Source: Monocercomonoides exilis PA203 (taxonomy: Eukaryota > Protista > Preaxostyla). Taken from it: a stretch of DNA of 64,000 nucleotides. Below are positions 1 through 64,000 of the stretch, in pieces; the first letter of the stretch is position 1; every line of letters begins with the position of its first letter. The stretch spans positions 1-64,000 of the forward strand of contig LSRY02000075.1 in the NCBI GenBank assembly GCA_001643675.2, given 5' to 3'. The notes beneath the pieces are model-generated. The model was given only the letters and a program-made list of their open reading frames with translations. It ran no database searches and had not been told where the DNA came from. A program made the translations under genes and the position numbers.

Positions 1-2477
1 CATCGCATGTGCGACTGAGAAGTGGATGCATGATGGTGATGGACAGCCAGGTGCAAGGGCAAGGGCAAGGACAAATACAAGGTGAGCAGAGCAATGATGC
101 AGCTCACAACTTCTCGTCCTTTTCTCATCGTTCAGCAACATTTCCAGTGCTGCCCACAAGCTTGTCCATATCATACAGCAACAATTGCATCTGTGTGGAC
201 AACTGCTTGTTCGATTCATGCTCATCATCATCATTTGTTTCGGAAGTTTCTTCATCGACTTCAAATATTGGAACAGTGATGTCATTTGTATCATGCACAA
301 ACATTGTGTGCTCGAGTTGTGTTGTTGATGGGGTTGGAGCAACGAAACACAGGGGAATCCTCTTGAGCAAGGGGGAGGTCTGCTGGTGGAACGGATCGCA
401 GATTTGTGGGGTCAACAGCACAGTTGTGGTGAAGGATTCGACAATCTGCAACTCAGAGGCTGGGGCACTGTCTGTTGCAGGGGAAGTGCAACGATCGAAA
501 GAGGAGTTTTGGAACAATAAGGGGAGTTCTGCGAAATATGTGTCAGCTCGGCGGAATGTGGTGTGCACAGAAGGTGGGAGAGTGGATGTGGTGAGTCTGA
601 AAGGAGGAGATGGGTGGAAGGAAGATGACTCGCTGTGGATGGTGGAAGAGGGGTGCCAGATGGGAGGGCTTGCCTCGGAAAGGAAGTCGGCATTCTTCAT
701 CCCATCTGAGCGAGGTGGAAACAGAGGAGACAGAGGATGTGGGAGGCATGGTGAAGCTGAGGTTCAAGGGACGGGTGCTGCTGCCGTGCTCCATGGGGTT
801 TGAGGTGGTAGGGGTTGTGGGGGATGTGGAGTTTGTGGAGAAGCACATGTTTGAGGAAGGGGATTTCGAGAGCGAAAGGGAGGTGAGGCGCTGGGCAGAA
901 ATGGAGAAGGTGGGATGGGGAGGAGAGGAGGCAGAGGTGAGGGTGAGCATTCTGTTTGGGAACATGTCTGCGCCGTCGCACACAGAGGCATTCATTTTGC
1001 AGAACAGAAGCGAGCCGAAAGGAAACGGAGACGAAAGGACTGTTGAAGGAGGAAAAGATGGAAAATCATTTTGGCCAATTATTGTGATTGTTATGGGAAT
1101 TGTTCTGTTTGTCATTCTTATTATTGCAGTAATTTCAATAGTCAGATGGAGGAATGTGAAGAATGAAGCAGAAGACTTGAGAGAGATTGTGAACGATAAC
1201 ATCAGAAAGGATCCGAAGGCGTTTGAGATGGTGACGATGGAGATGTCTCCTGAGGAGCAGTGGAGGAGAAGCCGAGAGGGAGGCTGAGAAGAAGAACGAT
1301 GAAAGGATCAAGAAGAGGGTATGAGAAAAGCTTGGGGCATTCTGAGTCATCAGAACATTTATTGAGCGAGAGTGGATCAACAGAATACATTTTGGGAAGA
1401 GACTCAGACAAGATCCCTCAATGGATGCTGGAGAAGGTTGATGAGGAAGAAGATGATATATCGAGAAAGCGAACACCATCACCATCCATTTCATCCACTT
1501 CTACCACAGACACATCAGACACAGAATCCACATTTGTTCGATCGGAAAGTCTGTACCCAACCACATCGTCGATGTCGAATCTGGTGGATGCAATGGCCTG
1601 CTCGTCTCCCCATGAGAAGCTGATTGTCGACTTGAGGGATTCGCTGTTCATGCTTCTTCATGGAAAGAATGAGAAGAAAGAGATGGCAATCGGAACTCTC
1701 CAGGAGAGGGAGGTGACGGCTGCTCAGATCCTGTTCTGGGTGGCCAATCTTGCACTCCACTCGTTTGATGAAATGAACAATCCACTTCAATCTCTTACCA
1801 ATCTGAGTCCCCACATTGTGTTGTTCTCAGAACATATGGTCATCTGCATTGCGATGCACTCGGACTGCTCTTCTTCAGATTCTGATTCATCCTCCATCTC
1901 TTCATCAACTGTTGTCACATCAACAAGTGATGATGATGATGACAGAGACTCTCTGCCCTCATCGGCATTTGAGGATGAGGAAGACAACAGGAAGGAGTGC
2001 ATGAGGTGGAAGGCGCCAGAGCTGCTGAATGGAACAACGAAGCATGCGACGAAAAAGACGGTTGTGTTTTCTGTTGGGATGATGGTGTGGGAGTGTGTGA
2101 CGCTGCAGATCCCGTTTGGGGAGTATTCGGGAGAGGCAGCAGGGAGCATGATTGTGCGAGGAGAGAAGGTGGGGATGGGTGTTGCGAAGGGGTCGCGTGT
2201 GAGAGGGGTTGTGGGTGGGTGCCTGCGTTATGAGGCAGAGGATCGGATGACGCTGGGAGATGTGAAGCGGGAGCTGATCAAGCTGTTTCCTCCGGGTGCA
2301 GCAGTGCTCACGATGACAGATGCGATCGGGTACGAAGAGGAGTCGGAGGAGGCCTGCAGCACCAGCATGGCCATCATGGCCAGCGGAGCCAGCATGACCA
2401 GCATGACAGACATTGGCAACAGATCCAGAGACATGAAGAAGCAAGAGGAAGTGAAGGATGAGGCGAATGGCAAATGA
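1..2477 (+). pseudogene. 3' part of a giant receptor-pseudokinase gene; inverted copy of the 7735-20218 gene with about 17 nt of small deletions (frameshifted pseudogene or consensus error)
   Basis: ORFs 9..803, 610..1287 and 1260..2477 reproduce consecutive pieces of the C-terminal ~830 aa of ORF 7735..17034 in shifting frames. The differences in 1-1330 are small indels, often in short runs. Confidence 0.85.
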
Positions 2478-4998
2478 TGAGGAGAGCAGAGCAGAACAGA
2501 GCAGAGCAGAATAATGAAATAAAAAAATCAGACAAGGGAAGTTGGAGCATTCATTGGAAAACTTTGAATGTGTTCAACATTTTTGAACAGCACAGAAACA
2601 GAGTTGGTTTTGAACAGAAAAATGAAAAAGAAAAAAGAAACCCTGGTGCAGACAACACAATGGCCATTGGAGGACGAGTGAAGCCAGAAGGCTTCTCTGA
2701 ACCCGTGGGAGCAATGATTGGTTGTTGCCCATTGTGTTGTGGATGCTTGGCCAGGTGCATGCTGCATGGTGCATGCTGGGAAAAGCGGCAATGCCCACAT
2801 GGCCGAACTCTGATCAGCACAGCATCGCTTCAGACAAAACATTTCATATTCCATTTTCAGTTGTTGTTGGAATAATTTTATTTATTTTATGTGTGTATTT
2901 TTGTATGGTTGTATCCATCTTCACAATATGAAGCATTTGCAGGATGGGACAAGTACTGCCCAGTTGCTGCTGTTTCATTTCCTCTTTTTTTCCTTTTCAA
3001 AGAAAAACAAGAAGAAAACTCGATATTCAGCATCTGTAAAAGCATCCGAAGTCATTCATGATTTTGTGGTGCTTGGTGTCTGGAGTGCCCATTGACCACG
3101 AAAGAAGCACAGGGAGGGTAAAAGACTTGGATGTATTTGCCGGAGAGCTGTCGTGCTGCTGTTTCGGTGCTGTCAGCCAAGTCTGTTTCTGAGTAGCCAG
3201 GCAAGGCTCAACACATTCCCACAAAAGTTGGGAAAGATATTTTCTGCATCTTGTCTCCTCCTGATGAATGGCCATCATCAGTCATCCAACTGCTTCAAAT
3301 GCAGCTCCAATCAAGAATGCAATCGAATTAACATGAGAAAGAAAGAAATGCTCTTTTATTGGCATTTCTTCTTCTTCTTCTTCTTTTCCCAGCTGAGAGA
3401 GGATATTCTTTTTCCAGAGCAGGAAAACATCTTGTTGTTTGTGCCATTGCACACACACACATACACACAAAATTGTGAGTTGTTGAATCTGTGGTTGATT
3501 GTGTTTGTCTGCATGAGATTCTTGTCAAAGGCCACTGAGCGTTGGAATGCCAGATGAAGGTGAATGATTGCTGCGTTTGTTGATTTTGTGGGAGTTGCAT
3601 CGCTAACACCATGGAACAAATACTCATGACCAAGCAAAATTAGCACACACAAAAAATATGGATTGAAATATTAAGGATTTGTGATGGTTCCCAATGATAT
3701 TGATTTTTGTTCCAATTTCTTTTATCGCTTCTGAGGGAAAAAAAACATTGGCAAAATTTTGTTATTCCATTTCTTCAACTGAAGAGACAATTTGACAAAG
3801 CGTTTTCAATGTGGGATAAGAACATCTTCCTCAACAGTCAATGTGTTTGTTATAATGTCATAGCATTAATTGGCTGAAAAATGTTCTTCCAATGGCAGCA
3901 TTTGTCAATGGAAACACATTCAAAAAACACCACATTTTGCTTCATATGCCCACAACAGGGAAGTGCAGTTGAACTTCGATCTCAACTGTTTGAGGGCAAT
4001 CACCAATATATGTGTAGTACTTTTATTTGTCTTCTTTTTTCATTGGGGCCCTTGTTCTAATTTATTTTTTTATTCAAACCGATTCAAACAATAAAAAAAA
4101 ATATTTTTTATAAATTATTTGTGATTTTTAATAAAAGCTGGACTTCGACAAAATCTTTTTATTTTCAAAAAAAGACGAAAATACCTCTTTTGAAGAAATA
4201 ACTGAAAATTTTCCACTCTTTGTTTTTTGACGATGATTTTCTTGTTTATTTTTTTTTTTCTTTTCGAAGAACGTCTGAGACAAAAACATAGCACTTCAAT
4301 CATTTTCTTCAAAATTAACTGCACTGTGGATAAACTTTTTGGTTAATTTACAATAAATAAAAAATACCCGTTTGATGGATTGATTTTTTATAAAAAATAT
4401 ATAATGAATGAGACAAATCAACAAAATTACTGCATCAATGGAGTTTTCAAACAAATGGGACAAATTTTGATTGATTCACTGCAATTTGTTGGTGTTGCCA
4501 TTTTATTGAAGGAAATGACATATTTATGCATCAAGAAAAGAAGCTTGAAAATCCATTTCCTTTTTCAACATATTTGTTGTTGTGTTTTTCTTTTTCACAC
4601 TGTTTTTTTGTTATTCTTCGCTTGATTCTTTTCATGTTTGGTGATTGGTTTTGAAATCATAACTGTTTTCGGAATGCGAATAATCTGTTCTATCTCTTTT
4701 ATGATGAGCACATTTTTTTTTGAATTCTAAATATTCAATCCTCTGAATTCAGAGTTGCAAGAAACAAACAAACAAGTGTTCAACAAACTCCACAAAGTTT
4801 TGCATTCACTTTAGGGAAAGAAACATTTGTGAAATATCTTCAGATAATTATTGTCATTATTTTTCTGATTGAATAATAACGATTATAATAATATTTGACA
4901 ATGTCATTATTTGTGTTTTGAAAATTCAAAAACAATTCTCTTCACTTTGTTTTTCTTTTTTTTGATTACAATTTCAATTTCAAAAATTCATGGATATG
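1..4998 (+). repeat. Palindrome P1, left arm (cut by window start); inverted copy of 5219-10229
   Basis: Mirror ORF pairs, e.g. 4380..4625(+)/5592..5837(-), sum 10217, and 3153..3557(+)/6654..7058(-). The window start catcgcatgtgcgactgaga is the reverse complement of 10210-10229. The inner end ...catggatatg(4998) pairs with catatccatg(5219). Confidence 0.97.
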
Positions 4999-5218
4999 GC
5001 TTTCTTTTCAAAAATCATTTTTTCATAACTTTTCAAAGAAAACAATGATTGAAATTTAAGTCAATTCTATTTGAATAATAAGTTATAAACCTGAATATCA
5101 CACAATTTAATTTTCAAAAAGAGAAATTGTTAAACCACACTTTGGAAGAACAAATAATCAGTATTGACCTAAATAAAAAAATAAAAATATAAAAAAAAAT
5201 AATTCCAAAAATCAAAGT
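4999..5218. other. P1 central spacer (220 bp), homologous to the P2 spacer at ~55945-56155
   Basis: Blocks atcattttttcataacttttcaaagaaaacaatgattgaaattt, ataaacctgaatatcacaca and gttaaaccacactttggaagaacaaataatcagtat occur in both spacers in the same orientation. Confidence 0.92.
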
Positions 5219-8200
5219 CATATCCATGAATTTTTGAAATTGAAATTGTAATCAAAAAAAAGAAAAACAAAGTGAAGAGAATTGTTTTTGAATTTTCAAA
5301 ACACAAATAATGACATTGTCAAATATTATTATAATCGTTATTATTCAATCAGAAAAATAATGACAATAATTATCTGAAGATATTTCACAAATGTTTCTTT
5401 CCCTAAAGTGAATGCAAAACTTTGTGGAGTTTGTTGAACACTTGTTTGTTTGTTTCTTGCAACTCTGAATTCAGAGGATTGAATATTTAGAATTCAAAAA
5501 AAAATGTGCTCATCATAAAAGAGATAGAACAGATTATTCGCATTCCGAAAACAGTTATGATTTCAAAACCAATCACCAAACATGAAAAGAATCAAGCGAA
5601 GAATAACAAAAAAACAGTGTGAAAAAGAAAAACACAACAACAAATATGTTGAAAAAGGAAATGGATTTTCAAGCTTCTTTTCTTGATGCATAAATATGTC
5701 ATTTCCTTCAATAAAATGGCAACACCAACAAATTGCAGTGAATCAATCAAAATTTGTCCCATTTGTTTGAAAACTCCATTGATGCAGTAATTTTGTTGAT
5801 TTGTCTCATTCATTATATATTTTTTATAAAAAATCAATCCATCAAACGGGTATTTTTTATTTATTGTAAATTAACCAAAAAGTTTATCCACAGTGCAGTT
5901 AATTTTGAAGAAAATGATTGAAGTGCTATGTTTTTGTCTCAGACGTTCTTCGAAAAGAAAAAAAAATAAACAAGAAAATCATCGTCAAAAAACAAAGAGT
6001 GGAAAATTTTCAGTTATTTCTTCAAAAGAGGTATTTTCGTCTTTTTTGAAAATAAAAAGATTTTGTCGAAGTCCAGCTTTTATTAAAAATCACAAATAAT
6101 TTATAAAAAATATTTTTTTATTGTTTGAATCGGTTTGAATAAAAAAATAAATTAGAACAAGGGCCCCAATGAAAAAGAAGACAAATAAAAGTACTACACA
6201 TATATTGGTGATTGCCCTCAAACAGTTGAGATCGAAGTTCAACTGCACTTCCCTGTTGTGGGCATATGAAGCAAAATGTGGTGTTTTTTGAATGTGTTTC
6301 CATTGACAAATGCTGCCATTGGAAGAACATTTTTCAGCCAATTAATGCTATGACATTATAACAAACACATTGACTGTTGAGGAAGATGTTCTTATCCCAC
6401 ATTGAAAACGCTTTGTCAAATTGTCTCTTCAGTTGAAGAAATGGAATAACAAAATTTTGCCAATGTTTTTTTTCCCTCAGAAGCGATAAAAGAAATTGGA
6501 ACAAAAATCAATATCATTGGGAACCATCACAAATCCTTAATATTTCAATCCATATTTTTTGTGTGTGCTAATTTTGCTTGGTCATGAGTATTTGTTCCAT
6601 GGTGTTAGCGATGCAACTCCCACAAAATCAACAAACGCAGCAATCATTCACCTTCATCTGGCATTCCAACGCTCAGTGGCCTTTGACAAGAATCTCATGC
6701 AGACAAACACAATCAACCACAGATTCAACAACTCACAATTTTGTGTGTATGTGTGTGTGTGCAATGGCACAAACAACAAGATGTTTTCCTGCTCTGGAAA
6801 AAGAATATCCTCTCTCAGCTGGGAAAAGAAGAAGAAGAAGAAGAAATGCCAATAAAAGAGCATTTCTTTCTTTCTCATGTTAATTCGATTGCATTCTTGA
6901 TTGGAGCTGCATTTGAAGCAGTTGGATGACTGATGATGGCCATTCATCAGGAGGAGACAAGATGCAGAAAATATCTTTCCCAACTTTTGTGGGAATGTGT
7001 TGAGCCTTGCCTGGCTACTCAGAAACAGACTTGGCTGACAGCACCGAAACAGCAGCACGACAGCTCTCCGGCAAATACATCCAAGTCTTTTACCCTCCCT
7101 GTGCTTCTTTCGTGGTCAATGGGCACTCCAGACACCAAGCACCACAAAATCATGAATGACTTCGGATGCTTTTACAGATGCTGAATATCGAGTTTTCTTC
7201 TTGTTTTTCTTTGAAAAGGAAAAAAAGAGGAAATGAAACAGCAGCAACTGGGCAGTACTTGTCCCATCCTGCAAATGCTTCATATTGTGAAGATGGATAC
7301 AACCATACAAAAATACACACATAAAATAAATAAAATTATTCCAACAACAACTGAAAATGGAATATGAAATGTTTTGTCTGAAGCGATGCTGTGCTGATCA
7401 GAGTTCGGCCATGTGGGCATTGCCGCTTTTCCCAGCATGCACCATGCAGCATGCACCTGGCCAAGCATCCACAACACAATGGGCAACAACCAATCATTGC
7501 TCCCACGGGTTCAGAGAAGCCTTCTGGCTTCACTCGTCCTCCAATGGCCATTGTGTTGTCTGCACCAGGGTTTCTTTTTTTCTTTTTCATTTTTCTGTTC
7601 AAAACCAACTCTGTTTCTGTGCTGTTCAAAAATGTTGAACACATTCAAAGTTTTCCAATGAATGCTCCAACTTCCCTTGTCTGATTTTTTTATTTCATTA
7701 TTCTGCTCTGCTCTGTTCTGCTCTGCTCTCCTCATCATTTGCCATTCGCCTCATCCTTCACTTCCTCTTGCTTCTTCATGTCTCTGGATCTGTTGCCAAT
7801 GTCTGTCATGCTGGTCATGCTGGCTCCGCTGGCCATGATGGCCATGCTGGTGCTGCAGGCCTCCTCCGACTCCTCTTCGTACCCGATCGCATCTGTCATC
7901 GTGAGCACTGCTGCACCCGGAGGAAACAGCTTGATCAGCTCCCGCTTCACATCTCCCAGCGTCATCCGATCCTCTGCCTCATAACGCAGGCACCCACCCA
8001 CAACCCCTCTCACACGCGACCCCTTCGCAACACCCATCCCCACCTTCTCTCCTCGCACAATCATGCTCCCTGCTGCCTCTCCCGAATACTCCCCAAACGG
8101 GATCTGCAGCGTCACACACTCCCACACCATCATCCCAACAGAAAACACAACCGTCTTTTTCGTCGCATGCTTCGTTGTTCCATTCAGCAGCTCTGGCGCC

Positions 8201-52900: not shown

Positions 52901-53010
52901 GAGCCAGCATGAACAGCACGACATGCATGACCAGCATGACAGACATTGGCAACAGATCCAGAGACATGAAGAAGCCAGAGGAAGTGAAGGATGAGGCGAA
53001 TGGCAAATGA
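43926..53010 (+). CDS. Second giant receptor-pseudokinase (~3030 aa): signal peptide, ~5 CG..C modules, TM, and the same cytoplasmic pseudokinase tail. +1 frameshift in the G7 run at 52717-52723.
   Basis: ORF 43926..52748 (MIPFVLVLCLSLSFCG; TM WILIVCIVAVVVLLIVSIIFIV) plus ORF 52726..53010 supply the same C-terminus as the P1 gene. P1 has gtgagaggggtt where this copy has one extra base in a G run. Confidence 0.88.
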
Positions 53011-55841
53011 TGAGGAGATCAGAACAGAACAGAGGAGAGCAGGATAATGAAATAAAAAAATCAGACAAGAGGAGTTGAGCATTCATTGGAAAACTTTGAA
53101 TGTGTTCAACATTTTTGAACAGCACAGAAATAGAGTTGGTTTTGAACAGAAAAAAGAAAAAGATAATGAAAAATGAAAAAGAAAAAGAAACCCTGGTGCA
53201 GATAACACAATGGCCATTGGAGGACGAGTGAAGCCAGAAGGCTTCTCTGAACCCGTGGGAGCAATGATTGGTTGTTGCCCATTGTGTTGTGGATGCTTGT
53301 CCAGGTGCATGGTGCATGGTGCATGCTGGGAAAAGCGGCAATGCCCACATGGCCGAACTCTGATCAGCACAGCATCGCTTCAGACAAAACATTTCATATT
53401 CCATTTTCAGTTGTTGTTGGAATAATTTTATTTATTTTATGTGTGTATTTTTGTATGGTTGTATCCATCTTCACAATATGAAGCATTTGCAGGATGGGGC
53501 AAGAACTGCCCAGTTGCTGCTGTTTCATTTCCTCTCTTTATTTTTTTTTTTTTTTTTTTTCATTTCAAAGAAAAACAAGAAGAAAACTCGATATTCAGCA
53601 TCTGTAAAAGCAGTCGAAGTCATTCATGATTTTGTGGTGCTTTGTGGCTGGAGTGCCCATTGACCACGAAAGAAGCACGGGGAGGGCAAAAGACTTGGAC
53701 GTATTTGCTGGAGAGCTGTTGTTCTGCTGTTCGGGTGCTGTCAGCCAAGTCTGTTTCTGAGTAGCCGGGCAAGGCTCAACACATCCCCACAAAAGTTGGG
53801 AAAGATATTTTCTGCATCTTGTCTCCTCCTGATGAATGGCAAGCATCAGTCATCCAACTGCTTCAAATGCAGTTCCAATCAAGAATGCAATCGAATTAAC
53901 ATGAGAAAGAAAGAAATGCTCTTTTATTGGCATTTCTTCTTCTTTTTTTTTTTCCAGCTGAGAGAGGACATTCTTTTTCCAGTGCAGGAAAACATCTTGT
54001 TGTTTGTGCCATTGCACACACACACACACATACACATTATTGTGAGTTGTTGAATCTGTGGTTGAGTGTGTTTGCCTCCATGAGCTTCCCGTCAAAGGCC
54101 ACTGAGCATGAGAATAGCAGATGAAGGTGAATGATTGCTGTTGTTTGTTGATTTTGTGGGAGTTGCATCTCTAACACAATGGAACAAATACTCATGGCCA
54201 AGCAAAATTAGCACATATAGGGTGGTCCATATTTCTTTGCAAAAATAATAAAAAATGGGAAATAAAAAATAAAAATATCAAAAAATATTCGATAAAACTG
54301 AATTTTGTTCGTCAATCGGTTTGTGAGCTGATCAAATACATGATAAGCTTCAATTTGTTAAAGTTTGGAGCTTCCAGATATTCGAACAATTCGTTCCTGG
54401 AATACAAAAATTTTTCTAATAATTTCAACAGATATGATTTTTCAATGGTTTGATAGTTGGAAAAGGTGATTGCAATTTGTAACGACTCATAAATGTGATT
54501 ATTATTATGAAAAATGTTTTTTAATAAAATTTTAATACCATATTTAATAATTTAAACAAAATATTTTGGACCACCCTATACTACAAATATGAATCGAATT
54601 ATTCAGGATTTGTGATGGTTCCCAATGGTATTGATTTTTGTTCCAATTTCTTTTATCGCTTCTGAGGAAAAAATAAACATTGGCAAAATTTTGTTATTCC
54701 ATTTCTTCAACTGAAGAGACAATTTGACAAAGCGTTTTCAATGTGGGATAAGAACATCTTCCTCAACAGTCAATGTGTTTGTTATAATGTCATAGCATTA
54801 ATTGGCTGAAAAATGTTCTTCCAATGACAGCATTTGTCAGTGGAAACACATTCAAAAAACACCACATTTTGCCACATATGCCCACAACAAGGAAGTGCAG
54901 TTGAACTTCGATCTCAACTGTTTGAGGGCAATCACCAACATATGTGAGCAATACTTTTATTTGTCTTCTTTATTCATTGGGGTCCTTGTTCTTATTTATT
55001 TTGTTTATTCAAATCATTTCAAACAATAAAATAAAATATTTTTTTTTTAAATTATTTGTGATTTTTAATAAAAGCTGAACTTCGACAAAAATTTTTTATT
55101 TTCAAAAAAAAAAAAAAAAAAAACGAAAATACCTCTTTTGAAGAAATAACTCAAAATTTTCCACTCTTTGTTTTTTGATGATGATTTTCTTGTTTTTTTT
55201 TCGAAGAACGTCTGAGGCAAAAACATAGCACTTCAATCATTTTCTTCAAAATTAACTGCACCATTCATGAACTTTTTGGTTAATTTACAATAAATAAAAA
55301 ATACCCGTTTGATGGATTGGTTTTTTTATAAAAAATATATAATGAATGAGACAAATCAACAAAATTACTGCATCAATGGTGTTTTCAAACAAATGAGACA
55401 AATTTTGATTGATTCACTGCAATTTGTAGGTGTTGCTATTTTATTGAAGGAAATGACACGTTTATGCATCAAGAAAAGAAGCTTGAAAATCCAATTCCTT
55501 TTTCAACATATTTGTTGTTGTGTTTTTCTTTTTCACACTGATCTTTGTTATTCTTCGCTTGATTCTTTTCATGTTTGGTGATTGTTTTTGAAATCATAAC
55601 TGTTTTCGGAATGTGGATAATTTGTTCTATCTCTTTTATGATGAGCACCTTTTTTTTTTGAATTCTAAATATTCAATTCACTGAATTCAGAGTTGCAAGA
55701 AACAAACAAACAAGTGTTCAACAAACTCCACAAAGTTTTGCATTTCCTTCAGGGAAAGAAACATTTGTGAAATATCATCAGACAATTATTGATTGAAATT
55801 TTTCTGATTGAACAATAATGATTATAACTATATTTGACAAT
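52718..55841 (+). repeat. Palindrome P2, left arm (the part whose mirror lies inside the window)
   Basis: Mirror ORF pairs 52726..53010/63708..63992, 54802..55029/61694..61921 and 55309..55581/61142..61414. Confidence 0.96.
54218..54578. mobile_element. MITE, Tc1/mariner-type (361 bp; TIR TAGGGTGGTCCA; TA target duplication)
   Basis: ta|TAGGGTGGTCCAtatt...aatatttTGGACCACCCTA|ta. Absent from the homologous P1 site (tagcacacacaaaaaatatgg, ~3641-3661). Confidence 0.9.
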
Positions 55842-56230
55842 ATCATCATTTGTGTTTTGAAAATTCAAAAACACTTCTTCCCACTTCATTTTTCTTTTTT
55901 TGATTCAAATTCCAATTCATTATATCTGTAAGTATCTTCATTTTTTAATATCATTTTTTCATAACTTTTCAAAGAAAACAATGATTGAAATTTCAGTCAA
56001 TTCTTTTTGAAAAATAAATTATAAACCTGAATATCACACATTTCAATCTGCAAAAAGAAAAATTGTTAAACCACACTTTGGAAGAACAAATAATCAGTAT
56101 CATCCAAAAAAATGAAGCAAAAAAATTAAGAAATTATTCCAAAAATCAAAGCCATATCCATGAATTTTTGAATTTGGAATTTTAATCAAAAAAAGAAAAA
56201 TGAAGTGGAGAGAATTGAAAGAGAAAATGG

Positions 56231-56299
56231 TTATTTCACTTCCTTCTCTTATATTTTTGAGAGCGCCACGTTATGGGTCAGTCACCCAGCTGATCAAAA
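56231..56299. repeat. DIRS 3' inverted terminal repeat
   Basis: ttatttcacttccttctcttatatttttgagagcgccacgttatgggtcagtcac..gctgatcaaaa is the reverse complement of 60746-60815 with few mismatches. Confidence 0.93.
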
Positions 56300-56550
56300 T
56301 GGCACTTAATGAAATGGTGAACAAACGTGCAAATGGGAAAATATAAAGAATTGAAACTTGGCAAATTGAAAATTATAACAAATGCAGTGAAAACACATGT
56401 TAGAAACAAGAAAGGTATTATTTAATAAATTTGAATGTTTTGAAATATAAACTTTAAAGAGAAGGTATTATTAGTGTTTAATTTTCACATCATTGTTATT
56501 CAGCAATGATTGATTCATAAGGGGATGTGATGTCTAAGTTGTGGAGGGAG

Positions 56551-56658
56551 TAAGAGAAGGAAGTGAAATAACCATTTTCTCTTTCAATCAAAACACAAGC
56601 GTTTTGATTACATAGAAAACATTTATTTCACTTCCTTCTCTTATATTTTTGAGAGCGC
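56551..56658. repeat. DIRS internal complementary region (ICR)
   Basis: 56551-56588 is the reverse complement of the element end 56214-56251, and 56585-56658 is the reverse complement of the other end 60780-60853. The two halves overlap at caat. Confidence 0.93.
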
Positions 56659-56687
56659 AGATAATTGGGAAGGTTTGATAATGTTAA

Positions 56688-58409
56688 TCAGCTTGAACTT
56701 GAATCCTTTTCTTCGTGTTGTTTCTTTTCCAATTCTTTTCTTCTTTGAGATCTTGTTCGGATAATGAATTCAATCTTAGCCTCGCTGATAACTGTCTGTA
56801 CAGTATTGTTTTCTTCGGTGTCCTCTGGTTCCTCAACTTTATCTGAGTATGCAAATATTGCTTGTTGTTTTTGATCTCCGCTTTTACATATTTTCTTTGT
56901 TGGTGTTTGTTCCTCGGATTTTGAACTGGAATTTGTTTCGGAATCGGATTCCGCCTCAGAATCTGAATCGGATTCTGACTCAAGCCCACTTTCTTCAGGT
57001 GGAAGAATAGTTGAATTGCCTCTTGCTATCACGTGGGCCAGCTTGCTTGACACATCTGATCGGACGTAATGCTTTGTGATAGTGTTGCTTCTAGGAGAGA
57101 GTCTGGCAAACTTAGCAATTTGGGCTAAGGGAATTCCTGCCATCGGTAGCGCAGTGATAGACGCATGTTTCAATGAGTAAGGCCCGAAACACCTCGGAAT
57201 CCCGGCATCCTGTAACATTTCAGCTGCATAGTTACGAATCCTTCTTGCAGAAAGTGTTAGATGAGTTTTCTCATCAATGAATAGTGAAGTTGCATTTGGC
57301 TGAGATTCTTTGATTCTGTTCCAAAGTTCCTTTACGGAAGCTGCTGGGCACACAAGCGGCTGTTCTTTTAGAAACGGGATGATAATATCTGTCCGTTCTG
57401 TCGATGTTTTTAATGATGAATCAAGTTTTATTTCATCGTCTCCAATTGTTGAATTATGGAGGTTAATCCTTTCCAACTCCGTAAAGCGACAGGCGGAGAA
57501 CAACATACATGTGCAAATAACCTTTTTTGTCAATTCGTGAAAATCAAGGTTCCTGTTCTCACCTAATGATGTTATTTTCAGCAGTAGGAGTTGTGGGTTC
57601 CAGATGTCTGGTTTGTCTCTTTTCTTCCTGTTTTCTGATCTTCTGAATGATTTTAATAGCCTTTGCATGAGAGCAGATTCTCCAAGGCCTCTTTTGTACA
57701 GTAATTCTGAGATAAGAGAAAATGCGGCACATGTTTGTTTGAGCGTCGAAGCTTTCGTCCCTTTGTCCTTCAGGCTTATGAAGATGTGAGCACATTTTTC
57801 AACCCAGGTACTCCAAGCTTCCGGTGGGTCTCCATTTCGATTATCTTCCCATATTTCACTGAAACGTGCATAACTATATGAATATCCTTTCCATGTGTTT
57901 TCAGCAACGCTATTTTTGCATTCATCGATTACCCTTTCGGAATATCCCTTTGAAAGAAGCATTCTCCGAAACCATTCTTCTCCTTGTGATACTAAGGATT
58001 GATTAGGACTATTCTCATTCTGCCTGGTGGTAGACTTGCTTCCATCCGTTTCATCCATCTTCCTTCCTTCAAAACCTGGTTCAGTTCTTTCCATCTCCAT
58101 TCGCAGTGTCTCGACATTCTTATCAGTGGTTCCCATATCTGCCCTCTCCAATCTGGCATCAGAAGAAGAACATGTGCATTTTCCTCTATTGATTTCACAA
58201 TCGTTGGAACTATTGACGGAATCGGAGGATAGGCTAAAATAACGCCTCTTTGCCATGATTGCTGGAGTCCGTCTTCGTTTAGCGTGCTTCCTGGACCGCA
58301 CCATCTGTCCGCTTTCGTGTTCTCGTTCGTTGCGAACGCATCCAACGTTATTATGAGATTGAGGTTTTCGGTGATCTCGTTTAGCTCTTCTTGTTTTATG
58401 GAGTAATCT
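56688..58409 (-). CDS. DIRS tyrosine recombinase ORF (fused to RT-RH in the ORF track only because of the frameshift at 58410-58414)
   Basis: FSACRFTEL (catalytic R, 57486-57488), LKT, VCPAAS, PYSLKHASITAL (HxxRH position, 57165-57182) and KHY (Tyr, 57066-57068). Acidic/Ser tail; TGA at 56688. Confidence 0.88.
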   Translation of the reverse strand, partial: RLLHKTRRAKRDHRKPQSHNNVGCVRNEREHESGQMVRSRKHAKRRRTPAIMAKRRYFSLSSDSVNSSNDCEINRGKCTCSSSDARLERADMGTTDKNVETLRMEMERTEPGFEGRKMDETDGSKSTTRQNENSPNQSLVSQGEEWFRRMLLSKGYSERVIDECKNSVAENTWKGYSYSYARFSEIWEDNRNGDPPEAWSTWVEKCAHIFISLKDKGTKASTLKQTCAAFSLISELLYKRGLGESALMQRLLKSFRRSENRKKRDKPDIWNPQLLLLKITSLGENRNLDFHELTKKVICTCMLFSACRFTELERINLHNSTIGDDEIKLDSSLKTSTERTDIIIPFLKEQPLVCPAASVKELWNRIKESQPNATSLFIDEKTHLTLSARRIRNYAAEMLQDAGIPRCFGPYSLKHASITALPMAGIPLAQIAKFARLSPRSNTITKHYVRSDVSSKLAHVIARGNSTILPPEESGLESESDSDSEAESDSETNSSSKSEEQTPTKKICKSGDQKQQAIFAYSDKVEEPEDTEENNTVQTVISEAKIEFIIRTRSQRRKELEKKQHEEKDSSSS

Positions 58410-60089
58410 CCCCCTTTCTAGCCTGGATAGAGCATCTGCTCTGACATTCTTCATCCCTGGCAAGTGTTGGGCTTTTATCTGAATGTGATTGTTCTTAACA
58501 AATGTCCACATTTTCATCAGCAACTTCCTGAGGTTTGTTCCTGCATTCCATCGATTGATATTGAAGACCGCTGTTGTTTTGTCTGATCTGATTAGCAAGC
58601 TGCAGACTTTGTTCGCTTGAAGAAGGTATCTGAAATGATTGAGTGCTCGATTGATTGCATATAATTCCCTGAAATTCGAGCTCTGGCCTTTCATCTTCCC
58701 TGGAAGCGATTGATGGAAATCGTATTTCTTGTTGTTCATCAATAGAAAAGCTCCCACGGCTCTCTCTGATGCATCTGTCGTCAAGGTTGCTTGTGGTTGG
58801 AATATTGGACAAATCTGTCTCGGTTTGTTCGCATTCAGTCTCGATATCCATTTTTGAATGCTCGGAAGGATTGATGGGTTGATTCTCATCCTTCCTTTCC
58901 ACCCCACTTTTTTGACCATTCTGTTCAGCAGCATGTACATTGATGGAAGAAGGAGTGAAGCTTCCTTGAAAACGAAGCGAGTTGCACTAAGCTTTCCAAT
59001 GAACGACGCGAAATCTCTCACTCTTGTTTGCTTGCATTTCAGTGCTCGGCGCCTCCATCTGTAACATTCTGTGAGCAATTCTTTCTTTCTGTCTTTCTCC
59101 AGAGTTACGGTGAAGTTGGAAGTGTCCCATGAATATCCGAGGAATGAAAAACGATTTGATGGTTCTGTGTGGCTCTTTTCCAGGTTTACAATTAGTCCAA
59201 GCTTTTGAAATAGACTTATAACTTCTTGTGCGATTCTCTTTAGTTCTTGCTTGTCTTGATGGAGCAAGACAATGTCGTCTAAATATGCGACAGCTTTCAC
59301 CTTCCATCTTTCCCGAATGAACGAAATGACCTTTCTCATAACTTTTGTGAATATTCTTGGAGAGTCCTTGTAACCGAAAGGCATGCTGGTGAAGCAATAA
59401 AATTCTTTGTTGAATTCGAAGCTTAGAAAAGGAGTGAAATCCTCTGAGACCTTGATGAGGTAGTAAGCTTGGCTTAAATCCAGTGTAACTGCGAAATCCC
59501 CATTCTTTATAATTCTTTCCACAGATCGATGATCCTCTTGTTTGAAGTGAATTGTTTTTATCGTATTGTTTAACCTCCTGCAATCCACAATCTGTCTCCA
59601 GCTCCCATTTTTTTTCCTGACAACAAATATTGGATTGAGAAATTTCACTTCGTTTTTGGTGGTTTTCCTGAGAATTCCAGTTTTCACTTGAACTTTGATT
59701 AACTCCGCCAAGGCTTCCCTTGCTTCTTGTGATTGCTTCGGTCTCCTGCAATTTACCTGAGAGTTGATAAGGGTTTTACGAGCTTTGGAACTCCTCCAAA
59801 CCGGAACTACTCCTCTTTTGATCATCTTTTCTCCTCCCACAATTTTCCATGCATCGGAAAATAACGCTGTTCTTCCACCAATTGTGAGGTTGTGTTCTAT
59901 TGAGACTTTGCTTTGTCCCCGGAACTCCCTCTTGAGTAATTTCTTGGAGCGCTGCTTGTGATGAATGATCGTTTTGTGCTGGGCGTCCGGGGCCAATCTC
60001 GAAAAAACCGATAATTCTTTGTTCCACTTTGAAATCCCCTGGTTTGTTTCTTCCTTGTATATAAATTTGTGATACTTGCAGACCCCCAT
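57992..60089 (-). CDS. DIRS pol: reverse transcriptase - RNase H - Dam-like adenine methyltransferase, with one frameshift at the C5 run 58410-58414
   Basis: RT: IFVVRKKNGSWRQIVDCRRLN, LDLSQAYY, MPFGYKDSP, AYLDD (59274-59285), FLG. RNase H: TTDAS, NFRELYA, HLPGMKNVRADALSRL. The shifted frame continues DYSIKQEEL..LDAFATNENTK..AYPPIP..MPDWRGQIW..LPPG to TAG at 57992. Confidence 0.92.
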
Positions 60090-60739
60090 CTTTGTTTCGT
60101 GGATATCTTCTTCGATTCTTCTAAAATTTCTTTTTGTCTTTGAGTTAACAGCGATGATGAGAACTTGTCTTTCATTTTTTCTGATTCAGAAAATCCATAT
60201 CTTGCTTGTATTCTAACGTGTCTAACTTCTTTCAGTGCCTGGGCTAAAAGTAAACATGAATCTGCTATCATTTCTTTCGTCGTATCTCCTGACTTGATTG
60301 TTGAACATGCCGAGATAAGTAACTTTATTGCTGGATAAAGATATGTTTCCGTCCTTTCCCCCGCACGATCGAGCGCGTCTTTCCATTATTCTTTGGATCT
60401 TGTAAATGGTGGAGGAGCATTCTGGATAAAAGGAATCAAATCTTTATCTTTAAAAAATGATTAAGTTTTGTTAATTTTATTCTCTGGTGGATGCATATCA
60501 TGAAATGAAATTTCTTGTGGCTGTCCAAATATTTCCATGAAAGCTTGCTGCAATGAAGACTCTCCTTCATCTTCTTCAATTCGTGTTAAATCTGTCCTGC
60601 CATCAAGTGCAGACTGAAAGATTTATTGGGAAGCGGAATAACTCCCTGCTATTGAAGGAATTGCACTCGGAGGGCCGCCAGTCAGCGGAGCTGCGCAAGG
60701 TTCGGTCGCGAGTCCGGTTCCCACGCAGATGGTCGACAT
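59897..60739 (-). pseudogene. DIRS ORF1 (gag-like), 281 codons with three in-frame TAA
   Basis: ATG at 60739, just inside the 5' ITR. A single frame runs to TAG at 59897, interrupted only by TAA at 60623-25, 60461-63 and 60386-88. It overlaps the start of pol, as in DIRS elements. Confidence 0.75.
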
Positions 60740-60745
60740 GTTTTC

Positions 60746-60853
60746 TTTTGATCAGCGATCGTGACTGACCCATAACGTGGCGCTCTCAAAAATTTAAGAG
60801 AAGGAAGTGAAATAAATGTTTTCTCTGTAATCAAAACGCTTGTGTTTTGATTG
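60746..60853. repeat. DIRS 5' inverted terminal repeat (60746-60815) plus terminal extension with a hairpin (60829-60852)
   Basis: Reverse complement of 56231-56299 and of the ICR half 56585-56658; hairpin aatcaaaac-gcttgt-gttttgatt. Confidence 0.92.
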
Positions 60854-62143
60854 TTCATGAATTTTTAAGACAAATAATGACATTGTCAAATATAGTTATA
60901 ATCATTATTGTTCAATCAGAAAAATTTCAATCAATAATTGTCTGATGATATTTCACAAATGTTTCTTTCCCTGAAGGAAATGCAAAACTTTGTGGAGTTT
61001 GTTGAACACTTGTTTGTTTGTTTCTTGCAACTATGAATTCAGTGAATTGAATATTTAGAATTCAAAAAAAAAAGGTGCTCATCATAAAAGAGATAGAACA
61101 AATTATCCACATTCCGAAAACAGTTATGATTTCAAAAACAATCACCAAACATGAAAAGAATCAAGCGAAGAATAACAAAGATCAGTGTGAAAAAGAAAAA
61201 CACAACAACAAATATGTTGAAAAAGGAATTGGATTTTCAAGCTTCTTTTCTTGATGCATAAACGTGTCATTTCCTTCAATAAAATGGCAACACCAACAAA
61301 TTGCAGTGAATCAATCAAATTTTGTCCCATTTGTTTGAAAACACCATTGATGCAGTAATTTTGTTGATTTGTCTCATTCATTATATATTTTTTATAAAAA
61401 AACCAATCCATCAAACGGGTATTTTTTATTTATTGTAAATTAACCAAAAAGTTCATGAATGGTGCAGTTAATTTTGAAGAAAATGATTGAAGTGCTATGT
61501 TTTTGCCTCAGACGTTCTTCGAAAAAAAAACAAGAAAATCATCATCAAAAAACAAAGAGTGGAAAATTTTGAGTTATTTCTTCAAAAGAGGTATTTTCGT
61601 TTTTTTTTTTTTTTTTTTTGAAAATAAAAAATTTTTGTCGAAGTTCAGCTTTTATTAAAAATCACAAATAATTTAAAAAAAAAATATTTTATTTTATTGT
61701 TTGAAATGATTTGAATAAACAAAATAAATAAGAACAAGGACCCCAATGAATAAAGAAGACAAATAAAAGTATTGCTCACATATGTTGGTGATTGCCCTCA
61801 AACAGTTGAGATCGAAGTTCAACTGCACTTCCTTGTTGTGGGCATATGTGGCAAAATGTGGTGTTTTTTGAATGTGTTTCCACTGACAAATGCTGTCATT
61901 GGAAGAACATTTTTCAGCCAATTAATGCTATGACATTATAACAAACACATTGACTGTTGAGGAAGATGTTCTTATCCCACATTGAAAACGCTTTGTCAAA
62001 TTGTCTCTTCAGTTGAAGAAATAGAATAACAAAATTTTGCCAATGTTTATTTTTCCTCAGAAGCGATAAAAGAAATTGGAACAAAAATCAATACCATTGG
62101 GAACCATCACAAATCCTGAATAATTCGATTCATATTTGTAGTA

Positions 62144-62504
62144 TAGGGTGGTCCAAAATATTTTGTTTAAATTATTAAATATGGTATTAAAATTTTATTA
62201 AAAAACATTTTTCATAATAATAATCACATTTATGAGTCGTTACAAATTGCAATCACCTTTTCCAACTATCAAACCATTGAAAAATCATATCTGTTGAAAT
62301 TATTAGAAAAATTTTTGTATTCCAGGAACGAATTGTTCGAATATCTGGAAGCTCCAAACTTTAACAAATTGAAGCTTATCATGTATTTGATCAGCTCACA
62401 AACCGATTGACGAACAAAATTCAGTTTTATCGAATATTTTTTGATATTTTTATTTTTTATTTCCCATTTTTTATTATTTTTGCAAAGAAATATGGACCAC
62501 CCTA
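62144..62504. mobile_element. Mirror copy of the 361-bp MITE in the right arm of P2
   Basis: Same TIRs and TA duplication (62142-43, 62505-06); the coordinate sum with 54218-54578 is 116722 at both ends. Confidence 0.9.
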
Positions 62505-63707
62505 TATGTGCTAATTTTGCTTGGCCATGAGTATTTGTTCCATTGTGTTAGAGATGCAACTCCCACAAAATCAACAAACAACAGCAATCATTCACCTTCA
62601 TCTGCTATTCTCATGCTCAGTGGCCTTTGACGGGAAGCTCATGGAGGCAAACACACTCAACCACAGATTCAACAACTCACAATAATGTGTATGTGTGTGT
62701 GTGTGTGCAATGGCACAAACAACAAGATGTTTTCCTGCACTGGAAAAAGAATGTCCTCTCTCAGCTGGAAAAAAAAAAAGAAGAAGAAATGCCAATAAAA
62801 GAGCATTTCTTTCTTTCTCATGTTAATTCGATTGCATTCTTGATTGGAACTGCATTTGAAGCAGTTGGATGACTGATGCTTGCCATTCATCAGGAGGGGA
62901 CAAGATGCAGAAAATGTCTTTCCTGACTTTTGTGGGGATGTGTTGAGCCTTGCCCGGCTACTCAGAAACAGACTTGGCTGATAGCACCGAAACAGCAGCA
63001 CGACAGCTCTCCGGCAAATACATCCAAGTCTTTTGCCCTCCCCGTGCTTCTTTCGTGGTCAATGGGCACTCCAGCCACAAAGCACCACAAAATCATGAAT
63101 GACTTCGACTGCTTTTACAGATGCTGAATATCGAGTTTTCTTCTTGTTTTTCTTTGAAATGAAAAAAAAAAAAAAAATAAAGAGAGGAAATGAAACAGCA
63201 GCAACTGGGCAGTTCTTGCCCCATCCTGCAAATGCTTCATATTGTGAAGATGGATACAACCATACAAAAATACACACATAAAATAAATAAAATTATTCCA
63301 ACAACAACTGAAAATGGAATATGAAATGTTTTGTCTGAAGCGATGCTGTGCTGATCAGAGTTCGGCCATGTGGGCATTGCCGCTTTTCCCAGCATGCACC
63401 ATGCACCATGCACCTGGACAAGCATCCACAACACAATGGGCAACAACCAATCATTGCTCCCACGGGTTCAGAGAAGCCTTCTGGCTTCACTCGTCCTCCA
63501 ATGGCCATTGTGTTATCTGCACCAGGGTTTCTTTTTCTTTTTCATTTTTCATTATCTTTTTCTTTTTTCTGTTCAAAACCAACTCTATTTCTGTGCTGTT
63601 CAAAAATGTTGAACACATTCAAAGTTTTCCAATGAATGCTCAACTCCTCTTGTCTGATTTTTTTATTTCATTATCCTGCTCTCCTCTGTTCTGTTCTGAT
63701 CTCCTCA

Positions 63708-64000
63708 TCATTTGCCATTCGCCTCATCCTTCACTTCCTCTGGCTTCTTCATGTCTCTGGATCTGTTGCCAATGTCTGTCATGCTGGTCATGCATGTCGT
63801 GCTGTTCATGCTGGCTCCACTGGCCATGATGGCCAAGCTGGTGCTGCAGGCCTCCTCCGACTCCTCTTCGTACCCGATCGCATCTGTCATCGTGAGCACT
63901 GCTGCACCCGGAGGGAACAGTTTGATCAGCTCCCGCTTCACATCTCCCAGCGTCATCCGATCCTCTGCCTCATAACGCAGGCACCCACCCACAACCCCCC
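63708..64000 (-). CDS. 3' end of a fourth receptor-pseudokinase gene copy (continues beyond the window)
   Basis: ORF 63708..63992 is identical to 52726..53010 (GGCLRYEAEDR...DEANGK). Confidence 0.85.
   Translation of the reverse strand, partial: GVVGGCLRYEAEDRMTLGDVKRELIKLFPPGAAVLTMTDAIGYEEESEEACSTSLAIMASGASMNSTTCMTSMTDIGNRSRDMKKPEEVKDEANGK

Follow-up and report, generated by a model that had tools for sequence, protein, structure and literature searches.

Identical paralogues arranged as inverted pairs are known from the VSP genes of Giardia, a metamonad. In Giardia lamblia there are 14 identical inverted VSP pairs, of which 10 are tail to tail, and no identical pairs occur in other arrangements (PMC2996952). 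In G. muris, five of the seven identical inverted VSP pairs are tail to tail (PMC7641422). Here we describe near-perfect tail-to-tail palindromes of giant receptor-like genes in another metamonad, Monocercomonoides exilis (the first eukaryote known to lack mitochondria), for which such structures have so far been unreported. The initial annotation of this DNA held that nothing similar had been described in metamonads, and the Giardia pairs show that claim to be wrong. In both organisms, a large multigene family of surface proteins contains identical paralogues solely as inverted pairs, mostly tail to tail, with a few kilobases between the ORFs, an abrupt end to the identity of the flanks, and pairs that terminate assembly contigs. 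The families themselves are unrelated: the VSPs are Cys-rich, whereas the M. exilis proteins have a beta-helix-like ectodomain and a kinase-like tail. The identical units also differ in size (about 2-3 kb for the VSP pairs, reaching 15 kb in M. exilis), and some arm boundaries in M. exilis fall inside genes, unlike those of the VSP pairs. The Giardia study put forward recent duplication, with no discussion of conversion, whereas in M. exilis related palindromes that are ~5% apart provide comparative evidence for concerted evolution.

The M. exilis structures also resemble the palindromes of mammalian sex chromosomes, in which arm-to-arm gene conversion keeps the arms alike (PMC8327919; PMC8600007; bioRxiv 10.1101/800185). 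In both, the arms reach 8-15 kb or more at >99% identity, enclose a unique spacer, and carry multi-copy gene families; the arms of one palindrome are closer to each other than to those of related palindromes, the spacer or centre is less stable than the arms, and the GC content of noncoding arm DNA may be raised. M. exilis differs in being a unicellular protist without known sex chromosomes, in having one giant convergent gene per arm, and in having many loci of one family (>1,000 tail matches), and the case for conversion comes from paralogous palindromes rather than from orthologues or pedigrees.

Short inverted repeats can also give rise to palindromic amplification by fold-back, as in Tetrahymena rDNA, in yeast and mammalian amplicons, and in the inverted-repeat amplicons of Leishmania. 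The products, too, are large inverted duplications that meet across a short spacer, and fold-back is a possible route for the first formation of the M. exilis palindromes. However, fold-back amplicons are terminal or extrachromosomal and are seeded by short inverted repeats, whereas the M. exilis palindromes are interstitial, have unique flanks on both sides, contain spacers without an inverted-repeat signal, and, where related, share what appears to be an inherited centre.

Structure of the two palindromes and their genes

The DNA analyzed (the window) comprises the initial 64 kb of the 107-kb contig C75. Self-alignment and ORF analysis confirmed the layout proposed in the initial annotation, in which each of two palindromes runs from a gene 3′ end through ~2.5 kb of noncoding DNA to a spacer and then into the mirror arm; in both, the giant ORF stops about 2.5 kb short of the centre. 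The first palindrome (P1) was detected as an inverted repeat with arms at 1-5003 and 5214-10229 (99.44% identity). C75 starts at window position 1, and the left arm of P1 is therefore cut by the contig start. The missing sequence was found at C30:1-14643. Because this segment continues the left arm, P1 is a 2 x 15-kb palindrome (arms of 15.0 kb), whose outer ends are sharp and whose flanks on C30 and C75 are unrelated. The arms differ by one mismatch in the 5,023 nt on C75 and by 15 in 14.7 kb in the comparison with C30.

The truncated left gene of P1 occupies 1-2477 on the forward strand (stop at 2477) and encodes a predicted TM helix and kinase-like tail. It is followed by the left noncoding arm (2478-5003, forward; 2.5 kb, GC 0.35), part of which is probably 3′ UTR, as an RNA contig spans about 2574-3744. 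The 210 bp spacer (5004-5213; GC 0.20) is unique and not self-complementary, and it has homologues in the centres of P2 and three other palindromes. Beyond it lie the right noncoding arm (5214-7734, reverse strand), which mirrors 2478-5003, and the right gene (7735-20245, reverse strand), which encodes about 4,170 aa in open frames at 7735-17034 and 16856-20218 with one frame break between them and extends to the sharp arm end at ~20245. A short-read contig from an independent run passes from the left arm into the spacer without differences; the read check used only short Logan contigs, which are about 80-350 nt long in this repetitive region. We also considered hairpin RNA produced by convergent read-through. 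One RNA run had no contigs over about 4140-6270, and the idea is unsupported, although contigs cannot show absence.

The arms of the second palindrome (P2) lie at 52718-55873 and 60852-64000 within the window (99.05% identity by self-alignment), and the full arms on C75 (47686-55873 and 60852-69033) are 8.19 kb long and 99.57% identical. Their 23 mismatches in 8,191 nt are clumped, with none in the outer 6 kb and 11 within one 125-nt patch. The left gene (43926-52748, forward strand) encodes a 2,940-aa protein with a predicted signal peptide, beta-helix-like ectodomain, TM helix, and kinase-like tail. The palindrome does not include the first 3.76 kb of this gene, and the outer boundary of the left arm (47686-55873, forward) falls within the ectodomain coding region. 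The right arm (reverse strand) runs from 60852 past the end of the window at 64000 to C75:69033, and the right gene, of about 2,600 aa, has its own N-terminus and a signal peptide near C75:71500. We rejected a further candidate, a single palindrome formed by the right ends of C75 and C46, as the overlapping ends are only 93.9% alike.

Two mobile elements distinguish P2. A 369-bp nonautonomous element at 54216-54584 in the left arm (forward strand) has a 100% identical mirror copy at 62138-62506 in the right arm (reverse strand); no other palindrome contains it, and its nearest other copy is 97% identical. The second is a 4.64-kb DIRS-type retroelement (56214-60853, reverse strand) with a 1,133-aa ORF (56688-60089) for RT, RNase H, and tyrosine recombinase. 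It lies 70 nt inside the right arm, has no counterpart in the left arm, and has been neither copied across nor removed. Three parts make up the P2 centre (55874-56213): the inner edge of the left arm in decayed form, a spacer homologous to that of P1, and the 70 nt at the inner extreme of the right arm (56148-56217), which the DIRS element severs from the remainder of that arm. The initial annotation had given both palindromes a spacer of ~220 bp; this is borne out for P1, but the arms of P2 are 4,978 bp apart with the DIRS element between them. The window also contains a 1-kb foldback element (27180-28186) with 430-nt arms, which is dispersed in at least 40 copies.

The genes of the palindromes belong to the known “tyrosine kinase-like” expansion of M. 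exilis, the largest family of the organism. Published analyses predict 332 tyrosine kinases and report that this largest family overlaps “unclassified repeats”; the strings “palindrom” and “inverted” are absent from the main text of both papers (PMC6759080; PMC8767320). Without exception, the database matches were M. exilis proteins carrying PF07714; the matching models, within a length limit of 0.55-1.75 times that of the query, are 200-650 aa long, compared with open frames of 2,500-4,200 aa. A first look at the nanopore assembly gave about 1,300-1,400 tail matches. Each arm is predicted to carry one giant gene for a type I membrane protein with a signal peptide, a beta-helix-like ectodomain, one TM helix, and a degenerate kinase-like tail. 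Family members scored 33.6-46.4 bits against PF07714 (cut-off 23.1) over only about positions 160-257 of the 258 in the profile, which correspond to the C-lobe, and the left gene of P2 fell under the cut-off at 21 bits. In an alignment of 39 sequences, the Gly-rich loop, the VAIK Lys, HRD, and DFG were not recognizable by eye, conservation being limited to the APE motif and subdomains IX-XI; for these reasons “pseudokinase” is a reasonable, though not proven, description. An AlphaFold2 model of the 448-aa cytoplasmic domain built from this alignment (pLDDT 46, pTM 0.24) was too poor for a fold search. Pfam searches with the ectodomains and with a neighboring 3,914-aa ORF, which is unrelated to the palindrome gene family, gave no matches.

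A shared centre and the relationships among arms

One homologous cassette, comprising the tail, 2.5 kb of noncoding 3′ DNA, and the spacer, is common to P1, P2, and three further centres. As the initial annotation had claimed, the spacers of P1 and P2 are homologous and have the same orientation: they are 84% identical over 327 nt, and the reverse orientation gives only a 60-nt arm edge. When the centre was used as a query, the genome yielded matches at these five palindrome centres only, and no solitary progenitor copy was found in the genome. Matches to the 2.5-kb arm DNA were confined to the same palindromes and one 0.4-kb fragment, apart from repeat-like matches of <100 nt. We considered whether the spacers could be decayed inner arms and rejected this, because no spacer (93-1,943 bp) was more self-complementary than shuffled sequence (z -2.3 to 1.8). 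The GC content is 0.35 in the noncoding arm, 0.20 in the spacer, and 0.29 in neighboring intergenic DNA, and the raised value in the arm is compatible with GC-biased conversion.

For P1 and P2, the arms are closer within each palindrome than between palindromes, which upholds another claim of the annotation. When only substitutions are counted, the arms differ by 0.00% in P1 and 0.72% in P2, whereas P1 and P2 differ by 4.8%. The arm differences of the palindromes are mostly homopolymer-type indels, and the frames of otherwise identical arms are broken at differing places, which indicates that the indels are residual nanopore errors. A tree of the arms contained the groups (A1L, A1R), (A2L, A2R), (A3L, A4R), and (A4L, A5L), each with 100% bootstrap support, and substitutions between groups amounted to 4.7-6.5%. 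The expected pairing of arms by palindrome thus held for P1 and P2 but failed for the centre at C46:558.9k, where the arms as assembled differ by 3.5% in substitutions and cluster across loci, each being near-identical to a partner at another locus. Formally, this is an outcome that the initial annotation had named as refuting its interpretation. Reverse-complementing the centre at C46:558.9k, however, gives exactly the centre found at the end of C46, and the assembled palindrome there therefore probably reflects a mis-join or inversion rather than a biological exception.

The arrangement extends beyond the five related centres. At least 10 other loci of the family, with other spacers, are palindromic or have equal-scoring tails placed tail to tail. 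Six other tail-to-tail pairs were compared in sequence, and all of them were palindromes: five have 0-7 mismatches over 2.1-4.9 kb, and the sixth has 33 over 2.9 kb, these arm lengths being minimum values. Same-contig pairs with equal tail scores, judged in three samples of 111 hits, were always inverted and never direct; most were tail to tail, and two were head to head. The spacers of the other family palindromes are unrelated and range from about 0 to 1.9 kb, with that of locus L021 almost absent. The arms of most palindromes differ by 0-0.3%, and those of L021 differ by 1.1%.

Proposed maintenance by conversion and its alternatives

As read from the assembly, the palindromes are genuine and chromosomal. 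The possibility that they are artefacts of fold-back chimeric nanopore reads or of collapsed or mis-joined repeats seems to us scarcely credible. P1 lies at the very start of a contig, two further centres are 0.4 and 1.2 kb from contig ends, the centre at C46:558.9k looks mis-joined, and the Canu assembly was built from reads with an N50 of 8.9 kb, which is shorter than the arms (PMC8767320). However, P2 and at least six other palindromes are internal to contigs of 0.1-2.3 Mb, with distinct unique sequence on either side; the outer flanks of the P1 arms are unrelated; and the contig from the other run crosses the P1 junction. A homologous unique spacer at five centres is not what random read chimeras would give, and real palindromes themselves cause contig breaks at identical inverted pairs, as reported for Giardia (PMC2996952). 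Insertion between convergent genes of a foldback or long-TIR transposon, consisting of the inner arms and spacer and seeding larger palindromes, is also very improbable. The genome does hold a dispersed foldback element, but the centre and the 2.5-kb arm DNA have no dispersed copies, arm identity is unbroken from the spacer via the 3′ DNA into the genes over 8-15 kb, and other family palindromes carry unrelated spacers.

The pattern of the P1 and P2 arms is that of concerted evolution, and we consider long-lived palindromes homogenized by arm-to-arm conversion the best reading (probability about 0.65), on the comparison of paralogous palindromes in one genome. The mirrored 369-bp element and the clustered mismatches of P2 are indirect signs of conversion, whereas the unhomogenized DIRS insertion counts against it. 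The near-zero divergence of most palindromes is equally expected from very recent inverted duplication, and multi-mapping short-read polishing may inflate the apparent likeness of arms. An unlikely alternative is that young palindromes formed independently by recent inverted duplication, for instance when a break close to the gene 3′ end led to fold-back priming or template switching, and then decayed without conversion, the shared centre being a recurrent breakpoint or seed. Such an origin fits the essentially identical arms of most palindromes and the DIRS insertion, the more diverged pairs (L021 and the assembled C46 palindrome) could form a decay series, and recent duplication was favored for the analogous VSP pairs (PMC2996952). 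Yet it requires four or five palindromes to have arisen separately at one identical nucleotide and with one spacer in a common orientation, although no progenitor survives anywhere in the genome. Mismatches fall in tight clusters instead of being scattered evenly, no spacer is an inverted repeat able to seed a hairpin, and the element mirrored in P2 alone could be explained only by insertion before P2 formed.

Under homogenization by conversion, the palindromic state would be inherited, and the arms would be repeatedly homogenized by intrachromosomal recombination, either arm-to-arm gene conversion or break repair templated by the other arm. Homogenization would spread outward from the spacer over a variable distance of 2 to 15 kb, and a stop inside the ectodomain would leave two genes with differing N-termini and an identical C-terminal part, as in P2. 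The grouping of mismatches into patches suggests that sequence is now and then exchanged with other members of the family, and the tails, being highly conserved, could serve as anchors when an entire inter-tail cassette passes from one tail-to-tail pair to another. Selection for the arrangement, as copy correction or as a source of new receptor chimeras, is speculative, as is the dedicated maintenance or diversification system put forward in the initial annotation. A wider proposal, which we advance tentatively and regard as rather unlikely, is a genome-wide palindrome regime in which repeated centre-out overwriting of the partner's C-terminal part and mobile tail-spacer-tail cassettes would protect copies from decay and keep generating new N-/C-terminal chimeras. 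This would be a protist counterpart of Y-chromosome palindromes and perhaps a metamonad strategy shared with the Giardia VSP pairs.

Implications for the M. exilis genome and its receptor-like family

In the M. exilis reference genome, part of the “unclassified repeat” fraction and several of the contig breaks can be explained structurally by the palindromes. The palindromes also suggest two repairs to the assembly: C30 can be joined to C75 via P1, and the stretch of C46 from 558.9 kb to 690.4 kb is probably mis-joined or inverted. The rule seen in Giardia, that identical surface-protein paralogues occur only as inverted pairs, is extended to a second, distant metamonad lineage and to an unrelated protein family, with arms five times longer than those of Giardia and with comparative evidence that identity is maintained rather than merely recent. 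If this is confirmed, M. exilis, being unicellular and culturable, would lend itself to studies of how large palindromes stay alike and of whether palindromes shape the repertoire of a huge receptor-like family.

Layout and extent of the two palindromes

Self-alignment revealed two inverted repeats in the window, P1 and P2, both of which are tail-to-tail palindromes of giant receptor-like genes on contig C75 (LSRY02000075.1, 107,145 bp long; the whole assembly comprises 101 contigs and 82,301,135 bp). The two are laid out alike: a giant ORF points at the centre (the inner arm edges and the spacer), and its stop codon lies about 2.5 kb short of it. The arms of P1 occupy C75:1–5003 and 5214–10229 around a 210 bp spacer and are 99.44% identical. 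Inside the window, the arms of P2 run from 52718 to 55873 and from 60852 to 64000, where they are clipped by the window end (99.05% identity). When the remainder of C75 was included, the full P2 arms covered 47686–55873 and 60852–69033 (8.19 kb each, 99.57% identity) with a separation of 4,978 bp.

The left arm of P1 is truncated at the start of C75. The first 14,643 bp of C30 (another contig of the assembly, as are those named similarly below) match the right arm of P1 at C75:5557–20245 (15 mismatches, 37 gap openings), and the start of C30 also overlaps C75:1–4660 in reverse orientation. Past C30:14643 and C75:20245, the two flanks are unrelated. P1 is therefore a palindrome of 2 × 15.0 kb plus 210 bp that links C30 (reversed) to C75. 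Each of its arms carries one complete gene encoding about 4,170 aa. The P2 arms have their outer end within the ectodomain coding region; the left gene has 3.76 kb of N-terminal sequence that the right gene lacks but a solitary paralogue on C30 shares, and the right gene has another N-terminus with its own signal peptide. The solitary, nonpalindromic paralogue (C30:95001–104793) is 95% identical to the P2 left gene over 9.8 kb and 97.4% identical to the shared arm part, and its homology stops 680 bp past the stop codon.

Counting substitutions only, we found 1 mismatch in 5,023 nt between the P1 arms on C75, 15 in 14.7 kb between the C30 and C75 arms of P1, and 23 in 8,191 nt between the P2 arms. 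The arms differ chiefly by short indels, many of them in homopolymers, and arms free of substitutions have their reading frames interrupted at different positions; the two copies of the P1 arm (window 7735–20218 and C30:1–14643) contain 1 and 5 breaks, respectively, again at different places. The most reasonable view of these breaks is therefore that nanopore errors were left over in repeats beyond the reach of short-read polishing, not that the genes are pseudogenes. For the PA203 nanopore assembly, reads with an N50 of 8.9 kb went through Canu 1.8, Nanopolish, and ten Pilon rounds (PMC8767320). Polishing evidently left indel errors in repeats, and gene models of the receptor family are therefore unreliable. 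After a local change of frame, the P2 left gene (window 52600–53010) stops about 70 codons ahead of the P1 right gene and other family members; the cause is an indel in the assembly or a genuine truncation that affects the last kinase subdomains.

The read evidence consisted of short Logan contigs, which speak to local junctions and not to long-range structure. A 267 nt DNA contig matches 4777–5043 with no differences and passes from the P1 left arm 40 nt into the spacer, and in a second run depth was present across the spacer bins. At approximately 2574–3744 lies an RNA contig of 1,177 nt, which makes a long 3′ UTR a probable part of the P1 arms; RNA contigs leave approximately 4140–6270 uncovered, and gaps of this kind cannot show absence of RNA.

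Two further features lie in the window. A 1 kb foldback-type element (27180–28186; 430 nt inverted arms of 97% identity, 147 nt spacer) has at least 40 copies of 70–86% identity across many contigs and no relation to the giant palindromes. An open frame of 3,914 aa on the minus strand (29506–41250), with low-complexity runs of Ser, Lys, and Glu, has no Pfam match and no likeness to the receptor family.

The receptor-like genes

The family has been described as protein tyrosine kinases of the TKL group; it is the largest in the genome and overlaps the "unclassified repeats" (PMC6759080; PMC8767320). The P2 left gene begins with a typical signal peptide. Pfam gave no match for its ectodomain, whose resemblance to right-handed β-helix, Chlam_PMP, and DUF1565 proteins in language-model features is offered as a lead only. 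A single TM helix is followed by a cytoplasmic domain of about 370–450 aa that is 65–80% identical across the family. PF07714 and PF00069 match the kinase C-lobe only (profile positions ~160–257), PDB matches are weak and confined to the APE-subdomain IX stretch of TAK1, TNNI3K, and ILK, and no Gly-rich loop, VAIK, HRD, or DFG motif is recognisable in family alignments. Given the C-lobe-only match and the unrecognisable catalytic motifs, "receptor-like pseudokinase" appears to be a reasonable, if unproven, label. The structure model of the cytoplasmic domain was too poor in quality for use. Database matches to the tail (the conserved C-terminal kinase-like part) were M. exilis proteins in every case.

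Shared centre and recurrence across the genome

Besides P2, the genome holds three more places with matches to the P1 centre: C75:~105.9k (1.2 kb off the contig end), C46:~558.9k (internal), and C46:~690.4k (0.4 kb off the contig end). This search found no solitary copy of the centre in the genome. The 2.5 kb noncoding arm matches these loci, the C30 arm, and one 0.4 kb fragment, other matches being repeat-like and shorter than 100 nt. The initial annotation had described the P1 and P2 spacers as homologous and co-oriented, and alignment bore this out (84% over 327 nt, with only a 60 nt arm edge aligning in reverse orientation).

Maximum-likelihood trees, one set built from the inner 4 kb of the arms and another from the outer 9 kb, resolved four pairs with 100% support each: the left and right arms of P1 (A1L,A1R), those of P2 (A2L,A2R), and, among the arms at the three further centres (A3–A5), (A3L,A4R) and (A4L,A5L). 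Substitutions amount to 4.7–6.5% between pairs (inner 4 kb) and 0–0.7% within them. The expectation that sister arms pair by palindrome thus held for P1 and P2, but the other two pairs cross assembled loci.

As assembled, the palindrome at C46:558.9k has arms that are 3.5% apart. Its centre recurs in reverse complement, with 2 mismatches, as the final 486 bp of C46, and the C46-end spacer is its spacer reverse-complemented (99%). Outside the spacer, the sequence at the right end of C75 follows that of the right arm at C46:558.9k, with about 3 mismatches over 1.1 kb, and probably leads into that arm. As the simplest reading, we moderately favor, over a true hetero-palindrome, two ordinary like-arm palindromes (alpha–alpha and beta–beta, after the two arm types at these centres, which differ by 4–7% in the inner 2 kb) combined with a mis-join or inversion of C46 between 558.9 kb and 690.4 kb, in which case the broken ends would all fit one path of C46, inverted C46, reversed C75, and C30.

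The 369 aa tail gave approximately 1,300–1,400 first-look genomic matches, of which 111 were scored per search. All six other close tail-to-tail pairs examined (L017–L022) are palindromes: C32:~697.8k (spacer 653 bp, arm mismatches 3/4,135), C29:~715.2k (756 bp, 1/4,613), C21:~851.5k (93 bp, 0/4,919), C36:~540.8k (1,943 bp, 7/2,094), C18:~1,031.0k (about 0, 33/2,905), and C18:~1,183.3k (118 bp, 4/4,919). Their spacers show no kinship to the P1 spacer and no self-complementarity. Among the matches listed, tail scores are equal or nearly so in additional pairs at C26:390k, C26:433k, C22:982k, and C6:727k, two equal-score pairs (C70 and C9) are head to head, and no equal-score pair is in direct orientation on a single contig. 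Several contigs start 6–8 kb from a minus-strand tail (C60:~6.7k, C40:~6.3k, C11:~8.2k, and C70:~6.1k), a geometry shared by C75, which suggests that the assembler broke more palindromes at these starts. Palindromes of the receptor family probably often cause contigs to break.

Probable homogenisation, possible recent origin, and known counterparts

Four to five palindromes have a common oriented centre and arm DNA that are about 5% apart, and the two arms within each lie nearer to one another by a factor of 10 to more than 100. A 369 bp nonautonomous mobile element occupies mirror positions in both P2 arms (54216–54584 and 62138–62506; 100% identical) and is absent from the other palindromes; elsewhere the genome has about 20 near-full-length copies of 77–97% identity. 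At 3647 and 6564, where P1 has empty sites, short-read contigs derived from other copies extend into this element. Mismatches between the P2 arms are clustered, with 6 in the innermost 30 nt, 11 in one 125 nt patch, and none in the outer 6 kb, and the alpha and beta pairs have similar patches near 10.1–10.6 kb and 13.6–14.2 kb. Such clusters look like conversion tracts, not even decay. The noncoding arm has a GC content of 0.35, compared with 0.20 for the spacer and 0.29 for intergenic DNA close by; the raised arm value is no more than suggestive as a sign of homogenisation.

The shared centre and arms without a progenitor, the mirrored element, the mismatch clusters, the P2 boundary inside a gene, and the arm GC together argue that the palindromic state was inherited and the arms homogenised. 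Long-lived palindromes whose arms would be kept alike by arm-to-arm homogenisation, as initially proposed, are the best explanation of these sequences (probability roughly 0.65). The evidence against homogenisation is a full-length DIRS-type retroelement (56214–60853; 4.64 kb, with an intact 1,133 aa ORF for RT, RNase H, and tyrosine recombinase), which is present in one P2 arm only, 70 nt inside the right arm, and has about 15 full-length copies elsewhere in the genome (88–95%; the closest, at 95%, is C1:1998525–2003166). Because it sits at the spacer edge, it may simply have enlarged the P2 spacer. The main rival, that each palindrome arose by recent, independent inverted duplication, would accommodate the one-arm insertion, but it has to contend with the features that point to inheritance, and we consider it unlikely. 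An assembly artefact, for all the suspected mis-join on C46, is very improbable; the palindrome structure is real and recurrent.

The belief that nothing comparable had been described in metamonads proved wrong. In Giardia lamblia, VSP genes form 14 inverted pairs of identical members, of which 10 are tail to tail and 4 head to head, with 2–4 kb between ORFs; contigs stop at the pairs, to which identical VSP genes are confined (PMC2996952). Seven such pairs occur in G. muris (PMC7641422). These pairs are the closest precedent for the M. exilis palindromes, and the mechanistic model is that of mammalian sex-chromosome palindromes. The strings "palindrom" and "inverted" are absent from the main text of PMC6759080 and PMC8767320; palindromes of this family are unreported there and new for M. 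exilis. We speculate that they may have a selected role in maintenance or diversification of the receptor family.
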